Shown here: positions 35,158 through 49,448 of the stretch, one piece after another | Layout: the number at the start of each line of letters is the position of its first letter | How positions within the stretch are numbered: the first letter of the stretch is position 1 | Source of the DNA: Diplonema japonicum | Lineage: Eukaryota > Protista > Euglenozoa: Diplonemea | Assembly: GCA_964019335.1 (NCBI GenBank) | Contig: OZ025663.1 | Span: 682,001 to 746,000 of the forward strand | Reading direction: 5' to 3' | Length of the DNA: 64,000 nucleotides | The notes under the pieces: generated by a model | Database searches by the model: none | What the model was told of the DNA's origin: nothing | Seen by the model: only the letters and a program-made list of their open reading frames with translations | Position numbers and translations under genes: made by a program

Positions 35158-38100
35158 ATGGTAGGCACCTTAAGGGACCGCTCTCCGATTAGGAACAGGA
35201 GGCTCAGCCTCGGTGGCGTGGCGGGTCCTGCAAGACCAGCCTCAGTGACGACCCCGCGTGTGCAGACACAAACTAGAGCATATGTATCGCCTCCTAGAAT
35301 GTCACCACCGAGCCCACTGCTTGCAAGAGGAGACTTTGAGACTCCTGTCTCCGTGGGTACCCCTCTTCTGCGTGGCCTCCCTAATAGAGGGCAGGTCACA
35401 GTCGATGCCTCTGCCCTTCGTGCCCTAGAGGATAACTTGGTCCCCGTCGTGGACGCCCTAGCTGCCGCTGAAGCAGAGAACCAGCGTCTTGAGTCAGCAC
35501 TGCAAGATACAGCACGCGAGAATAGCCGAGTCAAGAGGACAGCAGACCTTGCCACTGCCGCAGAGCGAGCGGAGCGCACGCATGTTGCCACCATGCACGC
35601 CACGGAGGTGGCGGATCTGAGACGAGGCTTAGATGAAGCTGACCTGGTGATACGGAAGCTGCAGAACGATCACGAAGACCCCGCCGTCATCAACAGGCTG
35701 AAGATGCGAGTTGCAGAGTACGAAGCCGAAAACACCGCTCTGAAGGCACAGCTGGACGCGCACAAGGTGCAGCTGCAAGAGCTGTCCTTGGAGAACACAA
35801 CTCTAGCTGACACTATCTCACAGCTGCGCTTGGACGCAGAACGAGCGCGAGCTGAGACAGAAGAGATGGCCGCACGAAACAACACTTTGCGTGATTCGCT
35901 TGCGCTGACAGTTGCCGAGCTCAACGCGCAAATGCAGCAGTCTGCAGACGGGAATGCTCTGATGGGGATGAAGATTCAAGGGTTGGAGTTTGAGCTACAT
36001 GACAGAAGCAAAGGTGGCGACGACGTGAAAAGGCTGAAAGAACTCCTCGAGGAGTCCCAGCAGCACCTGCAGCAGTACGACACCATCAACAAGAACCTCT
36101 CGTCCAACGCAGTAAGGTTGATTTCACAGAGGTCCAAACAGACACACGAGATGTACTCGAAGGCGAGAACCGAAACGATGAGGCAGGCTTGGTGGAAGAT
36201 GATTTACTTCTGGATCCTGACGCAGGGGAAGAAGTACAGGGACGCACAGTACGCGCTGCAGCAGGAGCTGATAAGGCACAGCGAAGAGACCGCAGAAGAG
36301 CTCAGCAGGATGCAGACCAATTGCATGGAAGAAATCATCAAGCTGCGTGATGACTCGGCCGAACAGATGGCACAGGTACTGGAAACTGCACGAAGGGAGA
36401 AGGAGATCTTCGCAAAAGACAAGATGTTCATTTTCGAGGACCTAGAGGCTGAGAGGCAGCGCAGGCTCGACTGTGAAGCAGCGAACAGCGAGTTGAAGCA
36501 GGAGCTGCAAAAAGCTGAATTTGCTAGGTCCAAGTTACAGAAAGACATGAACAATATGCAAAGAATGCTGGAGGCCGACACCGGGGAGCTGCGGGACGAG
36601 TTCCTCAACGGGTACCAAAGGCTCTCGGACGATCTGGTCATGATGTGGAAGAAGCTCAGAGAGGACCTCAACGGGCAGCTGCGTCGCGTGTGGGAGGAAG
36701 ACAGAGTCTCAAAGAGGGACCAGGAGAAGCAGCAAGAGAACAAGGGGCTGGTTGATAGCTTGCAGAAGAAGCTGCTCGAGACAGAGTTAGAGCTCGAGAA
36801 ATGGAAGGATAAGGCCACAGATGTATGTTATACCTTTACCAACACCCGACACAGGGCATTGAGAAGCTGTCGTATGAGATGGATCGTGCCAACAAGAAGT
36901 TGATCGAGGAGAATGCTGCTGCTCTGAAGAAGCTGAACCGCGAACTCTCAGACGAGGTATGATTCTTATAGACTCCAAATGGCACCAGACCGCGCGTGGT
37001 AGCAGCAAAGAATGGCGAGTGCAGGAACTAGAAGGAAGGATAGATGACCTTAAAGATGAACTGAAGCGTATGGCCGCTAAGATGAAGGAAGAAGAAGAGG
37101 CCAATGATGAGGTATGCACCACACTTTGTGTCTGTAAGCAAACCTAGTTCAAACGAGCCTTGGCAGCAGAGCAAGCGGCAAGGAACAAACTGCAGCATGC
37201 AGTCGACAAGCACAGCAAGTCTGAAGAAGAATACGAGCGCAAGATGGAGGAGATGGAGCAAGCTCACAAGGAGGACATCGATGCCTTGCAGAAGAAGATC
37301 AGTGACTTGAAGAAAGGCCAGTCGAATATGCAGCATGTGAACAAGGAGCTCGAGAACACTTTGGACGACCTGGACAAGGCGCAGCAGGAAGGTAGTGAGC
37401 TCCGTAACCTAATTTCTTCTCTGCGTGATCAATTGGGCGGCAAGGAGGGCAAAATGCAGGATCTGCTGGATATGATAGACCAGGAGAAAGCTGCCACGAA
37501 AAAGGTGGAGAAAGACCTGAAGGACTCCCAAAAAGCAAAAACCAACTTGGAGTACGAGATCGAAACACTGAAGAAAGAGCTGCAGGATGAAGAGTCCAGG
37601 AACAATGATTTCATGAAACAGCTTAAAGACGCACAGCAGCAGAACAGAAAGCTAAAGGGTGAACACCAAGAAGCGCTGCACGACTTGGAAGCAGAACTAG
37701 ATGAGGCCAGGGAACACATAAATGACGCCTCAAAGCTGAAGCAGGAACTGCAGACGCTGAGGGGGAAGATGGCAGACCTCTTAGATGACAACAGGCGGCT
37801 AAGCCAGGATAAGGAGGATCTGGAAGATAAGAACAGAAAGTTATCCTTCGAGATGGACCTTGAGAAGCAGCGCAACGCAGCCTCGAAGCGCTACTTGGAG
37901 AACGAGGTGGACGACCTGCGCCGTAGATTGGACGAAGCAGAGGAAGAGGCACAGGCACAGGCTGCGAAGTTTAAGGCACTGAAAAAGGAGAAGCAGCAGG
38001 AGATATCGGACCTCCAAGAGAAGATCTCCAGACTGGAAGAAGAAGCAAACCAGGCGACAAGCAACTTGAGCAGAGCTAACGATGCACTTACGAAGGACAA

Positions 38101-41100
38101 GGAAAAGCTGATGAAAGAGAAGCTTAAGGCGGAACAGGAAATCCTCGCTCTGAAGGAGCAGTGCGACGATGATGCTAAACTTCGCGACCAGCTGAACAGA
38201 CTGAAGCAGGAATTCGACAAGGAGCGTCAGTTCACCAAGAAGCTTCAGAAGGAGGCCGAAGACCACGACGCAGTGGTCAACAAGATGCGTAGGATACAAG
38301 ACCAGCTGAAGAAGGACTTGGGTGCTGCGCTGGCTTCCAAGGATGAGGTATGTCGCACAGCACCTAAGCATTGCCGGTAGGATCTGCGTGCAACGAAAGA
38401 TGATCTTGATAAGAAGTGCCAGGAGCTGCAAGAGACGGAGTTCGAAAGGGTATGCACGACCACTTGGCTCATGTTCATTACAGGCACGAGCCAGAGCTGA
38501 CGAAGAGGCAATGAAAAGGAGATACGAAGAAGAACGATCAAGGGCAGAAAGCGAAAGGGACAGAGCCGACCAGGAATACGACAGTGCGGAGGCCTTGAAG
38601 AACAGGTTGTCGACTATGGATGCAAACCTCTCAGCGCTCTCGGGAGACAATGCGAGAATGAAGCAAAAGCTCCAGGACGAGGCAAGGGCTGCTGAGGATG
38701 CAAACGCGGAGAGTGAAAACCAGCTTGCGAAGCTGCGGGCTGAGATGACACATGCAAAGAACGCACACAAAAACGCACTGGCCGCTGAGCAGGACCTGCA
38801 CAGGTCGTTAATGGACGAGCAGCAGCAGAGCAAAGATCTGGCCGACAAGATTGAGAAGCTCGAGAGGAGATTGCAAGACAGCCAGAGGTTTGCGGAAGAG
38901 AGCCGGGCCCTCGCAGAACAAAGGGACGAACTCTTGCGCAGACTGCAGAGGGAAGCTGACAAGGTCAACGATCTCGAAAGGGAGATTGATGCGTTGCGTC
39001 GCGACAGTAAGAACTTAAAGGATGCCCACGAGAAGGTAGCTACACTAGAAGCCCAGGTCGATGAACACCGTGCCCAGCAAGAGCAACTACGCCGTGAGGC
39101 CGAAAAGGTGGAGGGGCTGCAGAAGCAGATGAATCACCTGAAGCTTAAGGCGCAGCAGGAGATCGACGAGAGGATGGCTGACGCTGCTAAACAGATGGCT
39201 GATCTTCGCCAGCAGAAGGACGAGCTGGCTGGTGACAAGAGACGACTGTCCGATGATCTGAGGAATGCAAGGGCAAACCAAGACGACGCGGAAAGCATGA
39301 TCAAGGACCTTGAGCGAGAGCTTGCACGACTGCAGGATGATCTGAGGGAGCGTGACAGCAAGCTCCGCAGTGAAAGGCAAGCTTTGAAAAACGCGAACGA
39401 AGAAGTGGAAGACCTGAAGGATGAACGCGATGTCCTGACGCGAGAGCAGGACAAGCTGCGAGCAGAAATATCTAGCAACAAGGACGAGAGAGACCGCATG
39501 AAAGAGCGCCAAGAGTCCATGGCTGAGACTATAAGGTCGCTGGAGGACCAGTTGTCTGATCTCAGGAAACAGCTGGCAAAGATGAAGCAAGAGAATGAGG
39601 ACCTCAAGGGCGACGTTGACAGGGGACTGAATAACCAGCTGAAGGCACTCCGCAATGAATGCGACGAAGCGAACAGTGAAATCGAACGCTTGAAGGCCAA
39701 GATCAAGGACTTGAAGAAGAAGCAGCAGGACAGGGACATGCTTTCCGACGCGAACCAGACTTTGGAGAGCAATTTGAAGAAAGCCAAAGATGCCAATGAA
39801 GACTTGCAAGATACTATCGACAGGATGCACAGGGAGTTCAAGGAGAAGGCAGGCGATCAGGCGGCAAGGCTAGCGGATGAGCTGGACGAGATAGCCCGTG
39901 AAAGAAATGACCTCAAGCACCAGCTGGCGATGGAGCAGGAAAGGACTGAAGACTTGCAGAAGAAGCTAGCTAAGCTCGAGAAGAAGCTCGCAGACCACCG
40001 CAACATTGATGATAAGTACCAAGAGTTGGAAGGGAAGTACAACAAGCTGGGCGACAAGTTCAAGGAACTGGAGGCAGCACACGAACAGCTTGGTGCAAAG
40101 CACAAGCAGCTAGAGGCTGACTACGCGGATCTCATGGCAGAGCGTGACTCCTTGCTGAAGGGACAACAGGACTTAGAACGAAAGCTCAGAAACGCGGAAG
40201 AAGAAAGAGATGATGCCAAGCGAGCAGCAGGGAGGCTGAAGCAGGTCCTGGATGACATGGAGGGGAAGCTTGGTGACGAGGAAGATGAAAAAGGCAGAGC
40301 AGAGAAAATGGGCAAAAGGTTGAGGCAGCAGCTCGAGGAAGCACAGAAAGAAGCTGAGGAACTCCGCCAGAAACTTAGAAAGGAAGAGGAGGATAGAGAA
40401 GATGCCCAAAGGGAGAAGGAAGAAATTCAGAGGAACGCAAAGAAGCTCAAAGCAGAGCTGGAGGAGATGTACGGCGAGTTCGGAGACGAGAAGGGCAAGG
40501 TTGAGAAGATGAATAAGAAGCTGAGACAGCAGCTCGAAGAAGCTGAACTAGCAGCTGCCGAGCTCCGACAAAAGCTCAAGAGTGAAGAAGAGGAGAGGGA
40601 AGAGGCTCAAAGAATTGCGAAGAAGCTGAAGCAGGAGCTCGACACCATGCAAGGGGAGTTGGGTGACGAGAAGGGCAAGGTAGAGAAGTCAGCAAAGAAG
40701 TTGAAGGAAGAGCTCGACGAGCTGCAGGAGAAGTTTGACCAAGAAGAAGGCGAGAAGGATAAGTGGCAGAAGTCAGCAAAAGACCTGAAAGCAGAGCTTG
40801 ACGATGCACAAGAGGCAGCGGACAAGTTGCAGCAAAAGCTTAAGGAAGAGGAAGATGAAAAAGAAGAAGCTCGCCAGGTCTCCAAGAAGCTGAAACAGAA
40901 GCTTGACAGTCTTGAAGGGAAGCTGGATGACGAGGAGGACGAGAAAGGCAAGGTGGCTAAGTCGGCAAAGAAGCTCAGGGAGGAGCTCGAGGACCTGCTC
41001 GAGAAGCTCCAAAACGAGAAGGATGAACGAGAGAAGTGGCAGCGGTCCGCAAAGGAGCTTGAAGATAGATTGGAGTCCGCAAACAAGTCGGCAGATGGGC

Positions 41101-42377
41101 AGCTTGCAGCAAAGACAGAGGCGCAGAATGAGCTTGACAGCATGCAGAAAAAGCTGAAGGACAACCTCGAAAAGCAAAAGGAACAAGAAGAGCTGGCGGC
41201 CGAACAGGCTCGTGCAAAGAAGTCCTTGGAAGACGATTTGGAGCAGAAGACCCTTTTGGTGGAGCAGGGAAATGCCCTGAGGGCAGATCTGGCGGGGCAC
41301 CTCACGAAGGCCAACGAGACTGCCAAGAAGGCGCGAAAGGAAGCTGCAGAGTACAAAGAAAGGCTGGGGCAGAGCACCGACAAGAGTCAGAGAAACCTGG
41401 AGGATGCTGAACAAAAGATCAGGGAACAGGAGAGGAAGATCGGCTCGCTGAAGGATAAGATTGACTCGCTGAAGAGGAAGAACGAGGATCTCAAGGCGAG
41501 GCTGGCACAGCAAGAGGCAGAGTTGCGGGATTGCAACAGGTGCCGTGAGAAGCTGGCAGCAAGGGAAAGAGAGCTGGCTGAGAAGAACAAAGAGCTGGCG
41601 GAGCTGCGGGCCTTGCAGAGAAAGCTTGACGAGATGGTCGGGAACGAAGCAGACTACAAACAAAAGCTCGACGATATGCGAGGGGGCCTCGAGAGATGCA
41701 AGCAAGAGAACGCTAGGCTGGTGGCGATAGAGGAGAAGTCGAAGGATCGTGAGGTGAAGCTGAAGGAGTACGAAGAGCAGTACGACACCTTCCAGTTCGT
41801 GGTGCAGTCAAGGTCGCAGCTCATCAAGCAGATCTACGATATCTACATGGCAGCGAAGCAGGTACAGAAGTGCCACAGAAACAAAGAGAAGCTAGGAGAG
41901 AGCATCGAGACTACCGTGAAGATGGGCAAGTCGCTGATCTGCGACTTCTTCACGCACCCCGAGAAGATGCACTTAGGGCTGTCACCGTCACACTTCCCTC
42001 CCACAGTCGCAGCGCTGGGGAACACGGATGTGCACGCTAGTATTCTTGGTGAAGGGGTATGTCAAAGGTGCTTTAATCACAACCACACAGCATATCCAAT
42101 CGGTCAGAGAAGGCGCCGACGTCTCAGCCTTCGAGAATGCGGTCCCTGATGATGGGGAAGAGGGCAGGCCTGTGGTATGACATGATCACCTGTGTTTACA
42201 ATCTTCAGCAATCCGTGGCAGTACGAAAAGCTGTCAACAAGTTCCGGACCTCCGCCTCTGCATCCACTCCGAAGAAGAAGGACTATCCTGCGACCACTAC
42301 AGTATCGGTGTGTTTCCTTTTATTTGTTTTAAGACCCGGACCGAATTACTCATCCACAGGTCACGAGGCCTAAGTAG
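35158..42377 (+). CDS. Giant (>2000 aa) coiled-coil cytoskeletal protein, about 8 short introns
   Basis: ORFs 35152, 37160 and 38322 join through GTATG-AG introns and show a continuous heptad pattern. C-terminal non-coiled motif IYDIY...FFTHPEKMHLGLSPSHF. Ends TAG at 42375-42377. Confidence 0.8.
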
Positions 42378-44756: not shown

Positions 44757-44818
44757 CCATAGCTCGTAGTATTTTTTGGTTGCAACCCGTCATCTACCAC
44801 AGTTACACATTGTTGCAC

Positions 44819-46278
44819 ATGGGGTGCTGTGAAAGTAATGCGGCCGCGCCTTCGTCAGCCGAGAGGCCGGTTCCTGCTACAAAGCGTGCTGTAAAAGCTG
44901 AACAAGCAAGACCTGATCCGAAGGATTACGGTGAGTGGCCCTGGAGCAGGCCGAGTCCCGATGAGAGAAAAACATTTAAAAAGCAGACTGTTGACTTCTA
45001 TTACTCGAAAGAGTACCTGCAGTCATTCAAGATCCTAAACGCTGTCGAGGCCAAGGCATACGAGGCGTACCTGAACGACGACCTGGAGCAGGCACGCAGC
45101 ATCCTCGACAACAGGGGCGTGTTGTCGACTCCTGTGGTGTCGCCTTTGCAGGCCGAGTCGCCAGACGATAGTTTCTTGGACGAACAGGTGGAGAGGGTCA
45201 GGGGTGGCTCTGTGTCTGCAGTACCTGACGGCGCAGGTACGTCACGCCAAGGCCACGGTTTGGTGAGCGGACCGACATCACCGAGGACACCTAGGTATGC
45301 ATGCAGAACACCCCGTATTCCCACAGGACTGAATCCACCATCATGGCAGCTATCCGAAGGTGCCCGTTGTTCACTCACTTGAGTTCGAACTTTAAAGAGC
45401 ATGAAGTTGTGGCACAGGTATGAATGGCAGCACAAGGTACCGCGCACAGAACATGGTGAGGAAGGAATTCCCGTCTGGACACAGCGTCTATACAACAGGT
45501 GAGTACCCTTCCGATGATTTACGCTGCTGGTACGTCGTGATCCAGGGCAAGGGACTCATCAGACGCAGAAAGGTATGCACAAGAGTAAGCTCATGCCTGC
45601 AGGTGAAGGAGCTGCGGATGCCCGGCGATTTCTTCGGTGAGATGCTTGTGACCAACGCCACGTGCAAGAGTAACATCGATGTGAGGGCCTCAGACCAGCC
45701 GTTGGTGACCTACTCCTTGGATCATCACACATTCAGCAAGGTGCTGTCGAGCATTGCTCATCAGAGGAGAGAGAAATACAAGGAGGAGTTGAGGAAGGTA
45801 ACTGTGGGGAACAGAAAGCCTTTTGGAGAGCTGACCGAAGGTGGCTTGGCTCAGCTTGCAGACTGCCTCACAGAACGATCGTACAGGCCAGGAGACAGCA
45901 TAATAAAGGTATCTGAGGGGACATAAGAAGGAAGAACCAACACAGTACGGCGAGCCAGGGCGCTTTGCACATATTATCATGAAGGGCAGAGTTTCGGTGA
46001 TTGGGAGGAAGAATGGCTCGCCATTTAAGGTTTGCGAGTTTGCGGAAGGTGAAGACCCGATCGGCTTCTTGGAGTTCTTCAGCTCTGAAGAAGAGCTAAC
46101 CATCGCAGATGTAGTTGCCTCGCCCGAGAGCAGCAGTAACGTGGTAACGGCGTGCATCAACAAGGAACACTTCGAGAAGTGCATTGGAAGCGTGAAGGAG
46201 TTGTTCAAGGACGCTGCAGATACTGATCAGGTATACGGCTATTATAGGGACGTAAAGCAGGGTTCTATTCCTGCTTAG
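44819..46278 (+). CDS. PKA regulatory-subunit-like protein with two divergent CNB domains and N-terminal MGCC acylation motif, 4 introns (45295-45326, 45418-45449, 45573-45602, 45909-45945)
   Basis: Inhibitor-like RGGSVSA, CNB-A WYVVIQGK...GDFFGE, QLADCL....Y.PGD.IIKYGE.G...HII..G.V, CNB-B GFLEF....TIADVVA...HFEKCIG...YGYY. Confidence 0.8.
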
Positions 46279-46472
46279 CTTACAGACTGCAAAGTCTTCC
46301 ACTCCTGTTTCCGTTCACCAGACGCATCACTTTAACAAGTGGGGCACCGGCTAATAACACACTGTACATGACGAACTATACACCGATTATATTTTCGAAG
46401 CTATTTTTGTTGCTTGGTACCTAATCAGATTTAGTATTCAGGGAACAACAAAAAGAAAGAAAAGAAACAACC

Positions 46473-49190
46473 ATGATCCCTGTTTTTCAGCTATCAGGCC
46501 CCCCTGGTGTCGGGAAGAGCTCCGTGGGACGGTGCCTGGCAGAGGCTGGAGGCGTGTTCTTTAGTGGAGGTGATGTGATTAGAAGCAAGTTTGCTACTGG
46601 CGAGAGGCCTGTTTTTGAGATGATGAACGATGTGATGAAAGCACTGAAGGAGAAGCTCGGCAGTTGGAAGAGAAGCGGTAAGTCTTTCCTCGTACTGGAT
46701 ACCCGTTCCCCTAACCCTCTCGGGAAGTACTACGAAGACTCTCTTCTGGCGAAGTTTGGTTTTGAGAACCGTGTTGTGATTGAGTTGGAAGCAGCGCACG
46801 CTGTGCTGCTGGAGCGCATGCGTGGTAGAGGGAGAGAAAAAGACGAAGATAAGGTGCTTAAAAGGCTTGAGGAATATGATGCGCCTTTCGTGAAGCAGGG
46901 CAGAGCGGAGTTCCAGAACATGCACCCGAGCAATGTCGTGTGCATCAATGCCGAAGGCACGTTGGCTGATGTTGTCCAGGCTTGCCGCGAGATTGTAAAT
47001 AATTACGTACAACACCCACCATACAAGCTGGTGCACACATCTATGCACACCGTGTGCTCATTTGTCGATGACTTCGAGGAGTACCATGCGGTGCTCTCCC
47101 AGCTGCATCGTGCGTTTGGGATCAGCAGCGCTACGCAAGTGGGTGGCTACCTGCTCAACGACAACGGGCACCTCTCAAACCCCACTGCGCGCCGTGGCGA
47201 GCCCCTCATGCCTACAGATGACACCTACACGGTGTCAAAGAAGCTTGACGGCACGCGATACCTGATGGTCCTGCACAATAGGGTTTTCTACTTGGTGCCA
47301 ACGCATACCAACGGGTGCTACAAGCTTAATGTCGACAAGAGGTTCGAATACAACAACAGCCCCCCTCGTAGCACTCTCGTATGCGACTGTGAGCTTGTGC
47401 TCCACAGAGATAGCACGTGGGTGCTGTACGTATTGGATATCATGGCAGACATGGCACCTCCTAAGAAGCGACTTATCGGGAGGAGCGATGGAATGCCCTT
47501 GCTGGAGAGAATGAAACATGCTGGAAAGTATTTTCCTCTTGAAGGAAGTGTGAAGGCCACGCCCTACTCGGCGGACGTGGTTTGCAAGAACTACTACCCC
47601 CTCAAGAAGGTGGTTGCACTACTGACGGACTTCCACAAGCAGTCTGACTTGTATCCCACCGATGGCTTGATCCTGACTCCCAAGCGGCATTACATCACGA
47701 GGACCGACGGGGGTCTTATCAAGTGGAAGCCAAAGCAACATCTCACCGTCGACCTGCTCTTGCGCAGGGAGGGAAGTGAGGCCAGGCTTTTTTCTCTGAC
47801 AAGCAACCCCTTTGGCTATAAGCACTTTGGTGACATATACTTGAGTACAGCGGAGTTGGAAGAGTACAATGGCCGGATTCTGGAATGCTGCAAGAAGGGT
47901 GCAGACTGGACGGTGGTGCGCGTCAGGCATGATAAGATGTACCCTAACTCCGATGAGATTGCGCAAAAGTTAGTCAGCCCCGAGTACGACATACCAGCGA
48001 GCCTGCTAGTGCAACTCCTCCCCGAGATACTGGACAAAACAGGTTCGCCAATGGAGTTGACTGGACCGTGTATCGAAGGTGTTGTGTGCAGCATGTGCAA
48101 GTCAGATATTGAAAAGGGAACATACATTCTGACATCGGAGTCAGCGAACATGTGTAGAGTGTGCGTAGAATCATCCTGCCAAGAACGTATCTTCAAAGGT
48201 GAGGAAGCACACGCCGACCCTCTTGCAGAAGGGCGGGGACAGTACAAGAAGAACTGTGAAAAGGAAAGTGATCGCACTACCTCGCAAGATGCATTCAGAG
48301 CGTTCAACAACTGGATAAAGCTTGTCCTCATCATGCTGTGCAAGGGCCGAGGACACGCTGTGCTGGATCTAGGCTGCGGGAAGGGTGGCGATCTGTGCAA
48401 GTATCAATACGAAGGGCACCCTTCAGTGCTCGTGTGCATTGACAGATGTGAGGAGAGCATACGTGCAGCAGTGCAAAGGTACATAACTCTGCGGTTGCCC
48501 ATTCGCACACAGCTGTGTGTATCGTCTATTACGAGCAAAAGCCTTTTGGAGAACATCGACAAGTGCAAGTTGTACACAAGAGGCATTGTTTTCGACATGG
48601 TGAGTTGTCAGTTCGCTTTGCACTACGCATGGGGTTCAGACAATGCAGCAGAGACACTCATCCGTAACGCAAGCGGCAAGCTAGCTACTGACGGAATGTT
48701 CATATGCACTACAGTTGATTTTGATGCAGTGAAGGCTGGTCTGCAGGCACACCGCGGTACCGCTGCCACTCTGCATTTTGGAAAAGGGGTACTAAATGTG
48801 TGTAAGGAGGTCGTCGACAGAGTCCTCAGTGGTGACGAGGGCACCGGTTTGGAATACACGTTCACGTTGCCCGGGTTCGTCGATGGCTATGAGTACCTTG
48901 TGTCCCCGTCTTCCTTGGTCGGCACGTGTAAGTCACATGGTTTAGAGCTCGTTCCTGAGTACTCTCTGAACTTCATGGACTTCAGAGATATGATAATGAG
49001 TAAGCACAGCCACATCGGAGAGGAGGCACGCACAAAGCAGCGCGTCTCCTTCACTGCCGCAGAGGACAAGCAGCACTTCGAGCTGTCATCGCTGTACAAG
49101 GTGTACGTGTTTAAGAACACCTGTGAGCGCGCCTCGGACTGGGAGCCACCCGAGGCTTACCACGACCTGCGTGATGTTATGCGTCAGTAG
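46473..49190 (+). CDS. Adenylate-kinase-like P-loop + mRNA guanylyltransferase + cap guanine-N7 methyltransferase fusion
   Basis: GPPGVGKS and SGGDVIR; GTase motifs KLDG, DCE, TDGLILTP, IKWKP, RVRHDK.YPN; MTase FNNWIK, VLDLGCGKGGDL, SCQFALHY, EYLV. Confidence 0.88.
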   Translation: MIPVFQLSGPPGVGKSSVGRCLAEAGGVFFSGGDVIRSKFATGERPVFEMMNDVMKALKEKLGSWKRSGKSFLVLDTRSPNPLGKYYEDSLLAKFGFENRVVIELEAAHAVLLERMRGRGREKDEDKVLKRLEEYDAPFVKQGRAEFQNMHPSNVVCINAEGTLADVVQACREIVNNYVQHPPYKLVHTSMHTVCSFVDDFEEYHAVLSQLHRAFGISSATQVGGYLLNDNGHLSNPTARRGEPLMPTDDTYTVSKKLDGTRYLMVLHNRVFYLVPTHTNGCYKLNVDKRFEYNNSPPRSTLVCDCELVLHRDSTWVLYVLDIMADMAPPKKRLIGRSDGMPLLERMKHAGKYFPLEGSVKATPYSADVVCKNYYPLKKVVALLTDFHKQSDLYPTDGLILTPKRHYITRTDGGLIKWKPKQHLTVDLLLRREGSEARLFSLTSNPFGYKHFGDIYLSTAELEEYNGRILECCKKGADWTVVRVRHDKMYPNSDEIAQKLVSPEYDIPASLLVQLLPEILDKTGSPMELTGPCIEGVVCSMCKSDIEKGTYILTSESANMCRVCVESSCQERIFKGEEAHADPLAEGRGQYKKNCEKESDRTTSQDAFRAFNNWIKLVLIMLCKGRGHAVLDLGCGKGGDLCKYQYEGHPSVLVCIDRCEESIRAAVQRYITLRLPIRTQLCVSSITSKSLLENIDKCKLYTRGIVFDMVSCQFALHYAWGSDNAAETLIRNASGKLATDGMFICTTVDFDAVKAGLQAHRGTAATLHFGKGVLNVCKEVVDRVLSGDEGTGLEYTFTLPGFVDGYEYLVSPSSLVGTCKSHGLELVPEYSLNFMDFRDMIMSKHSHIGEEARTKQRVSFTAAEDKQHFELSSLYKVYVFKNTCERASDWEPPEAYHDLRDVMRQ

Positions 49191-49448
49191 TTGCAACGCA
49201 ACGTTTCTATTTAAAGGTTTTTTAATCCTACGTTCCAGTAGCGTTTTCGGAACATACTCTAACTCTCAGTTGTGTTTAATTGCTTCGGTGGCTCTCCTAT
49301 TTCAACTTAATCTTCTTTACCTCTCTTTTACTTACTACGGCCCCCACAAGAAACTTGGGAAGCTTCGGGACACAAGGGTCACTGTGTCGCAACTTGTTTC
49401 ATGAAGTATATTGTCACGTTAACTTGTCATCCAGGTGTTAATAAAAGA

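Follow-up and report, generated by a model that had tools for sequence, protein, structure and literature searches.

A candidate kinase, guanylyltransferase and cap N7-methyltransferase encoded by a single gene of Diplonema japonicum

Can one protein chain carry out all steps leading from 5′-monophosphate RNA (pRNA) to capped m7GpppRNA, and would such a chain serve the repair of caps or cap synthesis in general? This question is raised by an open reading frame (ORF) in the window analyzed here, a stretch of 64,000 nucleotides from the genome of the marine diplonemid protist Diplonema japonicum. Cytoplasmic recapping is debated in animals, in which the molecule responsible for the 5′-monophosphate RNA kinase activity is not known to have been identified. 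In trypanosomes, recapping is attributed to a pair of distinct proteins, Ce1 and Cmt1 (PMC11417388). An earlier note, made from the sequence of the window, had proposed a self-sufficient recapping enzyme of three domains and knew of no described version. This agrees with a literature search, which found no description of a kinase, guanylyltransferase (GTase) and methyltransferase (MTase) enzyme nor of a combination of ordinary capping with recapping.

The locus and its support in the DNA

The ORF is located at positions 46473..49190 on the forward strand (stop codon included) and encodes a complete protein of 905 amino acids, in which a kinase-like domain, a GTase, an OB fold, a linker with a putative zinc ribbon and a cap N7-MTase were delimited using the ORF list, Pfam and an alignment with two homologs, P0002 and P0003. 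It starts with ATG and is uninterrupted, with zero stop codons or frame changes over 2.7 kb, and upstream of the ATG the open frame extends for 16 codons only. A pyrimidine-rich tract followed by AG dinucleotides at 46427-46428 and 46440-46441 (46400..46441, forward strand) lies 30-45 nt before the ATG and may act as a spliced-leader acceptor, judging from its sequence. The kinetoplastid spliced-leader pattern was absent in the search performed, and the leader has the form known from diplonemids.

DNA contigs from two independent studies span positions 46200-49400 without interruption and show 0 differences; one of these contigs may be the assembly's own source. As they are identical over the gene, the domain junctions are no artefact of the present assembly, a concern that had been raised in the earlier note. 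The GC content of the gene equals that of its surroundings, and the gene belongs to an array of host genes that are unrelated to one another and share a strand, and is single-copy in the 62.5-Mb genome. A viral origin or insertion was rejected based on the GC content, the array of host genes and the N-terminal module, which is of the Ce1 type and not a TTM. As far as can be judged from the DNA, this is a real, single-exon, single-copy diplonemid gene for a predicted three-module capping enzyme.

The predicted modules of the chain

The N-terminal module is an adenylate-kinase-fold P-loop domain comprising amino acids 1-182 (46473..47018, forward strand, as for all features below), which was recognized by AAA_18, ADK and AAA_33 matches, an AlphaFold2 model, Foldseek and phmmer. 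AAA_18 matched amino acids 7-127 with 31.4 bits (cut-off 29.4), whereas ADK (PF00406) reached 20.2 bits at amino acids 7-136 and stayed under its cut-off of 26.8, so that the domain is described as adenylate-kinase-like and was not filed as an adenylate kinase. A motif search identified the P-loop GPPGVGKS at amino acids 9-16 (46497..46520). It is conserved in all three proteins with a kinase-like, GTase and MTase (K-G-M) architecture that were aligned, i.e., the query, P0002 and P0003. The short LID segment LLERMRGRGREKDED (amino acids 112-126; 46806..46850) aligns with LLERLKGRGRADDTDD of the Mycobacterium tuberculosis adenylate kinase, where LLERMRGRGR pairs with LLERLKGRGR and, elsewhere in the alignment, GGDVIR with GELFRR. 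The domain alone matches this enzyme with an E-value of 8e-6 (PDB sequence search; phmmer alignment). The AlphaFold2 model of amino acids 1-210 has a pLDDT of 81, with low values at amino acids 186-194, and its strands and helices alternate as in NMP kinases; in a Foldseek comparison, it comes closest to adenylate and UMP/CMP kinases (2cdn, TM 0.65/0.73). The adenylate-kinase fold proposed before is thereby supported, and the features of NMP kinases, namely a P-loop GxxGxGK[ST], NMP-site arginines, an arginine-rich LID and the fold itself, are all present. Invariant in the three K-G-M proteins are G9, P11, G12, G14, K15, R37, D76, R78, R115, R119, R121, and D126.

The kinase-like domain is connected to the GTase by a linker at amino acids 183-249 (47019..47219), which is partly conserved with Ce1-like proteins; the BLASTP alignments with two of these, P0133 and L002, are continuous through this region. 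The nucleotidyltransferase domain of the GTase with motifs I-V spans amino acids 250-419 (47220..47729). It was identified by mRNA_cap_enzyme (PF01331; 42.2 bits, cut-off 29.6) and by alignment with the human and mouse capping GTases, which it matches with about 3e-11 in a PDB sequence search. Motif I, KLDG, is encoded at 47241..47252, exactly where it had been noted before, and forms part of KLDGTR (amino acids 257-262), which aligns with KADGTR of human Mce1, K257 being the predicted GMP acceptor. The further motifs follow collinearly with DCEL at 305, LDIM (motif IIIa), DGLIL at 397, KWKP at 417 and RHDK at 485, where motif III reads DCEL rather than DGEL due to an exchange of glycine for cysteine. 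The OB-fold domain with motif VI, RHDK, extends over amino acids 420-505 (47730..47987). Within it, mRNA_cap_C (PF03919) matched amino acids 449-500 with 30.6 bits (cut-off 26.5), and ILECCKKGADWTVVRVRHDKMYPN aligns with a 24-residue segment of the human capping enzyme. The full set of capping-GTase motifs, KxDG(x)R, III, IIIa, IV, V and the OB motif VI RxDK, is therefore intact, and K257, D259, G260, T261, R262, E307, D397, G398, K417, K419, R485, D487, and K488 are invariant in the three K-G-M proteins.

Between GTase and MTase, a regular expression identified CxxC-x18-CxxC, a putative zinc ribbon (CSMC at 539, CRVC at 561; amino acids 539-564; 48087..48164). According to the alignment it is an insertion that is missing from P0002 and P0003. 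A PAM2-like motif was not found in the 905-residue protein by regular expression.

The C-terminal module is a cap guanine-N7 MTase domain of the RNMT/Abd1 type at amino acids 598-881 (48264..49115), which matched mRNA_G-N7_MeTrfase (PF03291) with 141.9 bits (cut-off 26.6) as well as human RNMT (2e-24) and Ecm1 (1e-16) in a PDB sequence search. It contains the SAM-binding motif VLDLGCGKGGD at amino acids 630-640 (48360..48392), found by motif search, and the cap-binding QFxxHY-type motif as QFALHY at amino acid 713. Residues D632, G634, G636, G638, G639, D640, D657, Q713, H717, and Y718 are invariant in the three proteins. Pfam, motifs and PDB matches thus agree on the arrangement of kinase, GTase/OB fold, CxxC linker and MTase that had been read from the sequence. 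A full-length AlphaFold2 model from the three-sequence alignment was poor (pLDDT 52) and was left out of the evidence.

Relatives and further capping genes

The K-G-M architecture is not unique to D. japonicum. P0002, from an ENA assembly, and P0003, one Trinity transcript of the diplonemid Namystynia karyoxenos that spans all three domains, are full-length, collinear and 31-33% identical, and both keep all three predicted active sites. A metagenome scan yielded 80 loci, each matching the MTase domain or the GTase tail only, and no further K-G-M protein. Protein searches with the whole protein, the three-sequence profile and region 1-520, limited to 8000 candidates, returned only the query or viral-type proteins composed of TTM, GTase and MTase and are uninformative as a negative result.

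The kinase and GTase module, from residue 3 to about 436, is collinear with the euglenozoan Ce1-like protein P0133 (BLASTP, E-value 7e-28) and with L002, a euglenozoan kinase-GTase (K-G) protein (2e-16). With respect to these proteins, the kinase is fused directly upstream of the GTase and the module is homologous throughout, an arrangement of the TbCe1 type. Furthermore, a feature search assigned a Euglenozoa 'RNA guanylyltransferase' cluster (PF01331 and AAA_17) at 0.96. In the GTase tree, the kinase-bearing GTases cluster together (support 90/94), and the Cgm1-like proteins P0070 and P0127 fall outside this group. In the MTase tree, built quickly and weakly supported along its backbone, the MTase of the query is likewise placed apart from this pair. 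P0070 is a GTase-MTase without a kinase from the transcriptome of Diplonema ambulator. The Cgm1-like proteins of D. ambulator and Entosiphon have KWKQP/KWKWP as motif V, a large GTase insert and no P-loop. Given its kinase domain and its position in both trees, and with the TbCgm1 motifs as published (PMC3278928), the query is not of the Cgm1 type.

The remaining capping genes were surveyed by six-frame profile searches of the 62.5-Mb genome, the first pass of which admits few candidates. No second cap N7-MTase was found in this genome, as PF03291 exceeds its cut-off at this gene only; of two weak matches elsewhere, one belongs to a generic methyltransferase and the other to a tRNA U5 methyltransferase. 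Likewise, PF01331 and PF03919 exceed their cut-offs only here, and a second GTase with complete motifs was not detected in the 62.5 Mb. The sole paralogue, which is kinase-like and GTase-like, no longer has the lysine of the P-loop or the aspartate of motif IV; it carries PAM2-like motifs, which were found by regular expression in the K-G paralogues. A third PF01331 match (C38) was rejected as a capping enzyme, since its motifs (KYDGER), as read from the sequence, resemble those of an ATP-dependent DNA ligase. A Cet1-type triphosphatase is encoded separately (83 bits). When the genome was searched with P0070 and P0127, the match was confined to the MTase domain of the present gene. In view of the kinase-less P0070 in D. 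ambulator, the absence of a Cgm1-like gene is unexpected and could be a gap, and the assembly could be missing a gene.

Proposed role and comparison with known capping systems

Since the genome yielded neither a further N7-MTase nor a further GTase with complete motifs, we lean towards the three-module enzyme being the general cap-0 synthase of the cell, with recapping as an added capacity. In such a mechanism, the GTase would form a K257-GMP adduct and pass the GMP to 5′-diphosphate RNA (ppRNA), and the MTase would methylate N7 using SAM. The ppRNA would be supplied in one of two ways, by the separate Cet1-type triphosphatase, which would use the pppRNA of the spliced leader and further primary transcripts, or by the chain's own kinase module, which would phosphorylate 5′-monophosphate RNA with ATP. 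The three-module architecture, the intact motifs and the collinearity with Ce1-like proteins indicate that the chain could plausibly take pRNA to m7GpppRNA, and to this extent the idea of self-sufficient recapping holds. A dedication to recapping is not obvious, as this is the only N7-MTase and complete GTase detected in the genome, which together with the separate Cet1-type triphosphatase makes a part in primary capping probable too. The architecture, the intact motifs, their conservation and the genomic uniqueness are shown by this analysis; all three activities, RNA as the substrate of the kinase and the location of the protein in the cell are inferred.

A stronger version can be entertained tentatively. 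The diplonemid would have no Cgm1-type nuclear enzyme at all, and one K-G-M chain would perform primary capping after Cet1 as well as autonomous capping of 5′-monophosphate RNA. It would be a 'Rosetta-stone' fusion of the trypanosome pair Ce1 and Cmt1, equivalent in a cell to the viral triphosphatase, GTase and MTase enzymes but with a kinase in place of the triphosphatase. If it is truly the sole capping enzyme, cap synthesis and repair would need no split into nuclear and cytoplasmic paralogues, unlike in trypanosomes. A conserved chain joining a Ce1-type kinase-GTase to an N7-MTase also provides independent evolutionary evidence for three activities acting on one substrate, and it offers a compact enzyme for biochemistry, structural work and one-pot capping of monophosphate RNA.

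Less probable is a dedicated cytoplasmic cap-repair enzyme, either a counterpart of G1-IP or a fusion of Ce1 and Cmt1, with primary capping of the spliced leader (SL) performed by another enzyme. The Ce1-type kinase-GTase module, the placement of the MTase apart from the Cgm1-like pair (in the quick tree with its weak backbone) and the Cgm1-like P0070 in another diplonemid are consistent with this, as is the proposal of TbCe1 and TbCmt1 as a joint cytoplasmic recapping pair (PMC11417388). A specialized role would also fit the domain order, which is that described for the cytoplasmic, stress-granule protein TbG1-IP (PMC4105752, PMC6075789). Against it, the zinc-ribbon insert is absent from both other K-G-M proteins. 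Moreover, the genome lacks a detectable second N7-MTase or intact GTase that could take over primary capping, and the query is without the PAM2-like motif that K-G paralogues have and that is reported for trypanosome G1-IP, G5-IP, and CE1 (PMC11754739).

It is rather improbable that the protein is a Cgm1-like GTase-MTase whose adenylate-kinase-like domain works as a nucleotide kinase or ATPase, or has a regulatory or structural role, and is not an RNA kinase. As this domain closely matches true adenylate kinases, an NMP or another small molecule may be its substrate: the best sequence and structure matches, including the LID motif, are genuine adenylate and UMP/CMP kinases, and the generic AAA_18 alone passes its cut-off. 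In addition, diplonemid K-G paralogues tolerate the loss of the P-loop lysine, which shows that the domain can persist without catalysis. However, the P-loop, the equivalents of R37, D76, and R78 and the LID arginines are invariant in all three of the K-G-M proteins, which share about 32% identity, and the domain, linker and GTase are homologous to the Ce1-type module, for whose T. brucei representative pRNA kinase activity has been proven. Finally, a three-domain artefact, whether by mis-assembly or because neighboring genes are truly separate or spliced apart, is hardly credible given the spanning contigs of two studies, the two distant collinear relatives, one of them a transcript, and the unbroken reading frame.

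Among the known systems, TbCe1 (T. brucei, cytoplasmic, 586 amino acids) resembles the query in its P-loop N-domain of about 200-250 amino acids directly before the GTase, and the two domains turn pRNA via ppRNA into GpppRNA (PMC11417388, PMC3278928). TbCe1 differs in being without a methyltransferase, which the query carries in its chain, and is proposed to cooperate with the separate TbCmt1 (PMC11417388); trypanosome CE1 is reported with a PAM2 motif (PMC11754739).

TbCgm1, which caps SL RNA in the nucleus, has a GTase (1-567) and an N7-MTase (717-1050) in one chain like the query, and is described without a kinase domain (PMC3278928). Based on its genomic uniqueness, the query probably shares the housekeeping job of TbCgm1, acting after Cet1.

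The closest described layout, compared by description only, is that of TbG1-IP (Tb927.11.6720), which had been left out of the earlier note's list of trypanosome enzymes, as had G5-IP. It comprises a GTase (409-701), two zinc fingers (711-780) and an m7G MTase (774-1039) in the same order as in the query, whose CxxC-x18-CxxC occupies the position of the two zinc fingers, and it is cytoplasmic as part of an EIF4E5-EIF4G1 complex (PMC4105752). The protein is 1057 amino acids long according to PMC6075789, which also places it in stress granules. In contrast to the query, no kinase or NTPase is reported in its 408-residue N-terminal part, and a PAM2 motif is (PMC11754739). This raises the question of whether a kinase-like domain is hidden in the unannotated N-terminal 400 residues of trypanosomatid G1-IP.

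The viral trifunctional enzymes of vaccinia (D1), mimivirus and faustovirus likewise combine an N-module preparing the 5′ end, a GTase and an MTase in one chain, and make cap-0 starting from an uncapped 5′ end. Several of the hits obtained here (P0007, P0008, P0091, P0108, P0161-P0163) have this layout. Their N-module is a TTM triphosphatase (ExExR/K strand) acting on pppRNA, whereas that of the query is a kinase of the adenylate-kinase fold, which would use pRNA.

Reading frame and domains of the K-G-M gene

The K-G-M gene, which combines a kinase-like domain, a capping guanylyltransferase (GTase) and a cap guanine-N7 methyltransferase (MTase) in one chain, is located at 46473-49190 on the forward strand and comprises an uninterrupted ORF of 905 aa. 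Only 16 codons of the frame are open 5′ of the ATG, and the protein starts with the first strand and the P-loop of the kinase fold, with nothing ahead of them. Pfam matches were AAA_18 (aa 7-127, 31.4 bits) and ADK (aa 7-136, 20.2 bits, under its curated cut-off), followed by mRNA_cap_enzyme (aa 250-419, 42.2 bits), mRNA_cap_C (aa 449-500, 30.6 bits) and mRNA_G-N7_MeTrfase (aa 598-881, 141.9 bits). Among solved structures, the sequence matched human RNMT (2e-24), Ecm1 (1e-16), the human and mouse capping GTases (~3e-11) and M. tuberculosis adenylate kinase. Modelled with AlphaFold2 (pLDDT 81), residues 1-210 most resembled adenylate and UMP/CMP kinases (2cdn, TM 0.65/0.73), and the LID segment LLERMRGRGREKDED of the kinase domain was aligned with LLERLKGRGRADDTDD of the mycobacterial adenylate kinase. 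The GTase motif KLDG lies at aa 257-260 (nt 47241-47252), two CxxC pairs are located at aa 539 and aa 561, and the sole basic cluster of the protein is KKR at aa 331. The ORF listing, Pfam and the structure matches bear out the single three-part ORF described in the earlier note, whose motif coordinates, including those of KLDG, agree with the motif positions.

The flanking genes are unrelated to the K-G-M gene and are encoded on the same strand, and the GC content around it is uniform. The gene upstream (44780-46280, +) is apparently split across three frames, with ORFs at 44780-45382 and 45420-45926, the latter with a weak cyclic-nucleotide-binding domain, and an open stretch to ~46278; short introns or frameshifts may account for this. 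Further upstream lies a 6-kb region (36000-42200, +) whose strands differ very strongly in composition (GC skew 0.19-0.29, AT skew 0.38-0.47). Its 1275-aa ORF gave a weak match of the coiled-coil (intermediate-filament-like) kind, and the region appears to be repetitive coding sequence rich in purines.

Capping toolkit of the genome and predicted role

The whole assembly (62.5 Mb, 132 contigs) was searched with six-frame profiles. The K-G-M gene alone was above the cut-off for the cap N7-MTase (PF03291) as well as for the GTase (PF01331 and PF03919). Of the two weak PF03291 matches, one is a generic protein of the Methyltransf_12 family and the other a tRNA U5 methyltransferase. The only PF02940 gene found encodes a Cet1-type triphosphate tunnel (TTM) RNA triphosphatase on contig 1 (195226-195813, -; locus L011:1321-2250, -; 310-aa open frame, 82-83 bits), the presumed partner of the K-G-M enzyme in primary capping. 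The 3′ half of the spliced leader is present in >200 copies, with the full form ACCAACGATTCTAAAGCTACAGTTTCTGTACTTTATTG, which we take to be of the diplonemid type, and the kinetoplastid form was absent from the assembly.

As their motifs are complete, the GTase and MTase modules would almost certainly make m7GpppN from 5′-diphosphate RNA (ppRNA). Provided that no gene has escaped the assembly or the searches, the K-G-M protein would be the organism's sole cap-0 synthase, a claim that rests on assembly completeness and search sensitivity. Being unique in the genome, its GTase and MTase would have to act, after the Cet1-like triphosphatase, on every transcript that receives a cap, the spliced-leader RNA included. 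Based on the homology to the Ce1-type module and the conserved catalytic residues, we infer that the kinase module phosphorylates 5′-monophosphate RNA (pRNA), so that one chain could, unaided, cap RNAs that have been decapped or processed. It is somewhat probable that the protein acts as a general cap-0 synthase that also caps pRNA via its kinase module.

A role devoted to cytoplasmic recapping, or similar to that of G1-IP, would fit the order of GTase, zinc finger and MTase shared with the cytoplasmic TbG1-IP, but is unlikely, as it is opposed by the uniqueness of both modules in the genome. Of the self-sufficient recapping proposed earlier, the three modules with intact motifs are retained, but not a restriction to recapping. 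That the kinase-like domain has a non-RNA role is quite improbable.

Conservation of the fusion

The stretch 46200-49400 was covered in single ~40 kb Logan contigs from two studies with 0 differences, one of them possibly the assembly's own source, and is present in five runs, each time as long genomic-type contigs; no run among the five is registered as RNA. In the larger runs X4 and X5, contigs break at 46474-46534 and 48303-48332, with low-depth variants and a one-letter difference, and the end of one contig at 48332 is a loose A-rich tail. The pattern points to variation between alleles or strains, without structural difference.

Two relatives were recovered when 1.8 billion representatives were searched exhaustively with phmmer, P0002 (889 aa, 33% identity, from a 998-kb contig of an ENA assembly) and P0003 (1252 aa), which is a Trinity transcript from Namystynia karyoxenos, a diplonemid. 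The two proteins show the same order of kinase-like domain, GTase, OB fold and MTase and are collinear with the K-G-M protein over the full length. Identity across the three-protein alignment is only 31-33%, yet all catalytic positions are invariant in the kinase module (G9/P11/G12/G14/K15, R37, D76, LID R115/R119/R121), the GTase (K257/D259/G260/R262, E307, D397/G398, K417/K419, R485/D487/K488) and the MTase (D632/G634/G636/D640, D657, Q713/H717/Y718), which we take as a sign of purifying selection at each of the three active sites. That the ORF is an artefact, as the earlier note had considered for the domain junctions, is contradicted by the difference-free contigs and independently by both relatives, and is highly improbable. 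Residues 1-313 of P0003 form an extension rich in RGG and W-G/G-W repeats (e.g., RWPAGGGG, RHWPSGGGG), resembling RNA-binding or Argonaute-hook-like low-complexity regions, which the protein in the window does not have.

Relationship to known capping enzymes

Kinase, linker and GTase of the K-G-M protein are collinear with proteins consisting of kinase-like domain and GTase (K-G), namely P0133 of Namystynia (E 7e-28) and the only K-G paralogue in the genome, L002 (E 2e-16). The nearest ESM Atlas feature cluster is a Euglenozoa 'RNA guanylyltransferase' family (PF01331 and AAA_17, 0.96). In the tree of GTase domains, the proteins that bear a kinase form one group (90/94), apart from a Cgm1-like pair and from triphosphatase-GTase-MTase proteins. 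In a quickly built MTase tree whose backbone is weak, the K-G-M protein and P0002 form a pair (SH-aLRT 97) close to Namystynia and separate from the Cgm1-like pair (SH-aLRT 96), and the top MTase matches are stand-alone cellular enzymes, e.g., of Willaertia and Ciona. Together, the domain trees and these matches suggest that the fusion arose independently of that in Cgm1; it may have come about when a free-standing cap methyltransferase was added to a Ce1-type module.

The paralogue L002 (contig 4, 402652-403974, -; locus L002:1108-3027, -) is a 639-aa ORF in which the P-loop (GAPGSGVV) has lost its lysine, GTase motif I reads KTDGSR and the motif IV aspartate is lost. Past a poly-A run its frame turns to nonsense (KKKKKK... 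FFFFFFF), either by a frameshift or by an assembly error in the homopolymer. In its counterpart P0133 the P-loop is kept, but the lysines of motif V and the one of motif VI have been lost. Both carry N-terminal PAM2-like motifs (LNPNALAFAP and MNPEATPWLP in L002), which were found in none of the three K-G-M proteins. Since PAM2 motifs are reported for trypanosome CE1, G5-IP and G1-IP (PMC11754739), L002 resembles a relative of the CE1/G5-IP type that is linked to PABP and probably not catalytic.

TbCe1 (586 aa) consists of a 250-aa P-loop N-domain and a GTase and turns pRNA first into ppRNA and then into GpppRNA (PMC11417388; PMC3278928), and was proposed to work alongside the cytoplasmic TbCmt1 (PMC11417388). 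TbCgm1 (1050 aa; GTase 1-567, MTase 717-1050) (PMC3278928) acts in the nucleus and caps the spliced-leader RNA after TbCet1 (PMC11417388; PMC3278928). The layout and motifs of P0070 (Diplonema ambulator) and P0127 (Entosiphon), GTase-MTase proteins of ~1005 aa without a kinase, resemble published TbCgm1. Searched against the assembly, they matched only the MTase domain of the K-G-M gene and revealed no orthologue. Either the gene has truly been lost or replaced, or it falls in a gap of the assembly, or the genome is less close to D. ambulator than assumed.

The earlier note had named TbCe1 and TbCgm1 and left out TbG1-IP as well as TbG5-IP, an NTPase-GTase, and a 142-kDa NTPase/GTase/zinc-finger protein (PMC4105752, PMC5750579). 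TbG1-IP (Tb927.11.6720, 117.5 kDa, 1057 aa) comprises a GTase (409-701), two zinc fingers (711-780) and an m7G MTase (774-1039) (PMC4105752, PMC6075789). It is a cytoplasmic protein that moves to stress granules and, as part of the EIF4E5 complex, binds EIF4G1 (PMC4105752, PMC5750579, PMC6075789, PMC4652759). Its published domain order matches that of the K-G-M protein, and no kinase or NTPase domain is reported for its first 408 residues, whereas the K-G-M protein has a kinase-like domain.

Full-text literature searches gave no publication about the capping enzymes of diplonemids and, in line with the earlier note, none on a kinase-GTase-MTase enzyme; the 'trifunctional' capping enzymes described there are viral only. 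As far as these searches reached, the architecture is undescribed, and it is conserved in at least three lineages, in a family for which sampling is shallow and databases possibly omit close relatives of this genome. P0007, P0008, P0091, P0108 and P0161-P0163, long matches in which the ExExR/K strand of a TTM triphosphatase comes first, are giant-virus-type triphosphatase-GTase-MTase enzymes, and the Atlas whole-protein matches are likewise nucleocytoviral. These enzymes share the logic of the K-G-M protein, but start with a triphosphatase instead of a kinase. The parts and chemistry of the K-G-M protein are already known, and its architecture is an addition to the euglenozoan capping-enzyme repertoire.
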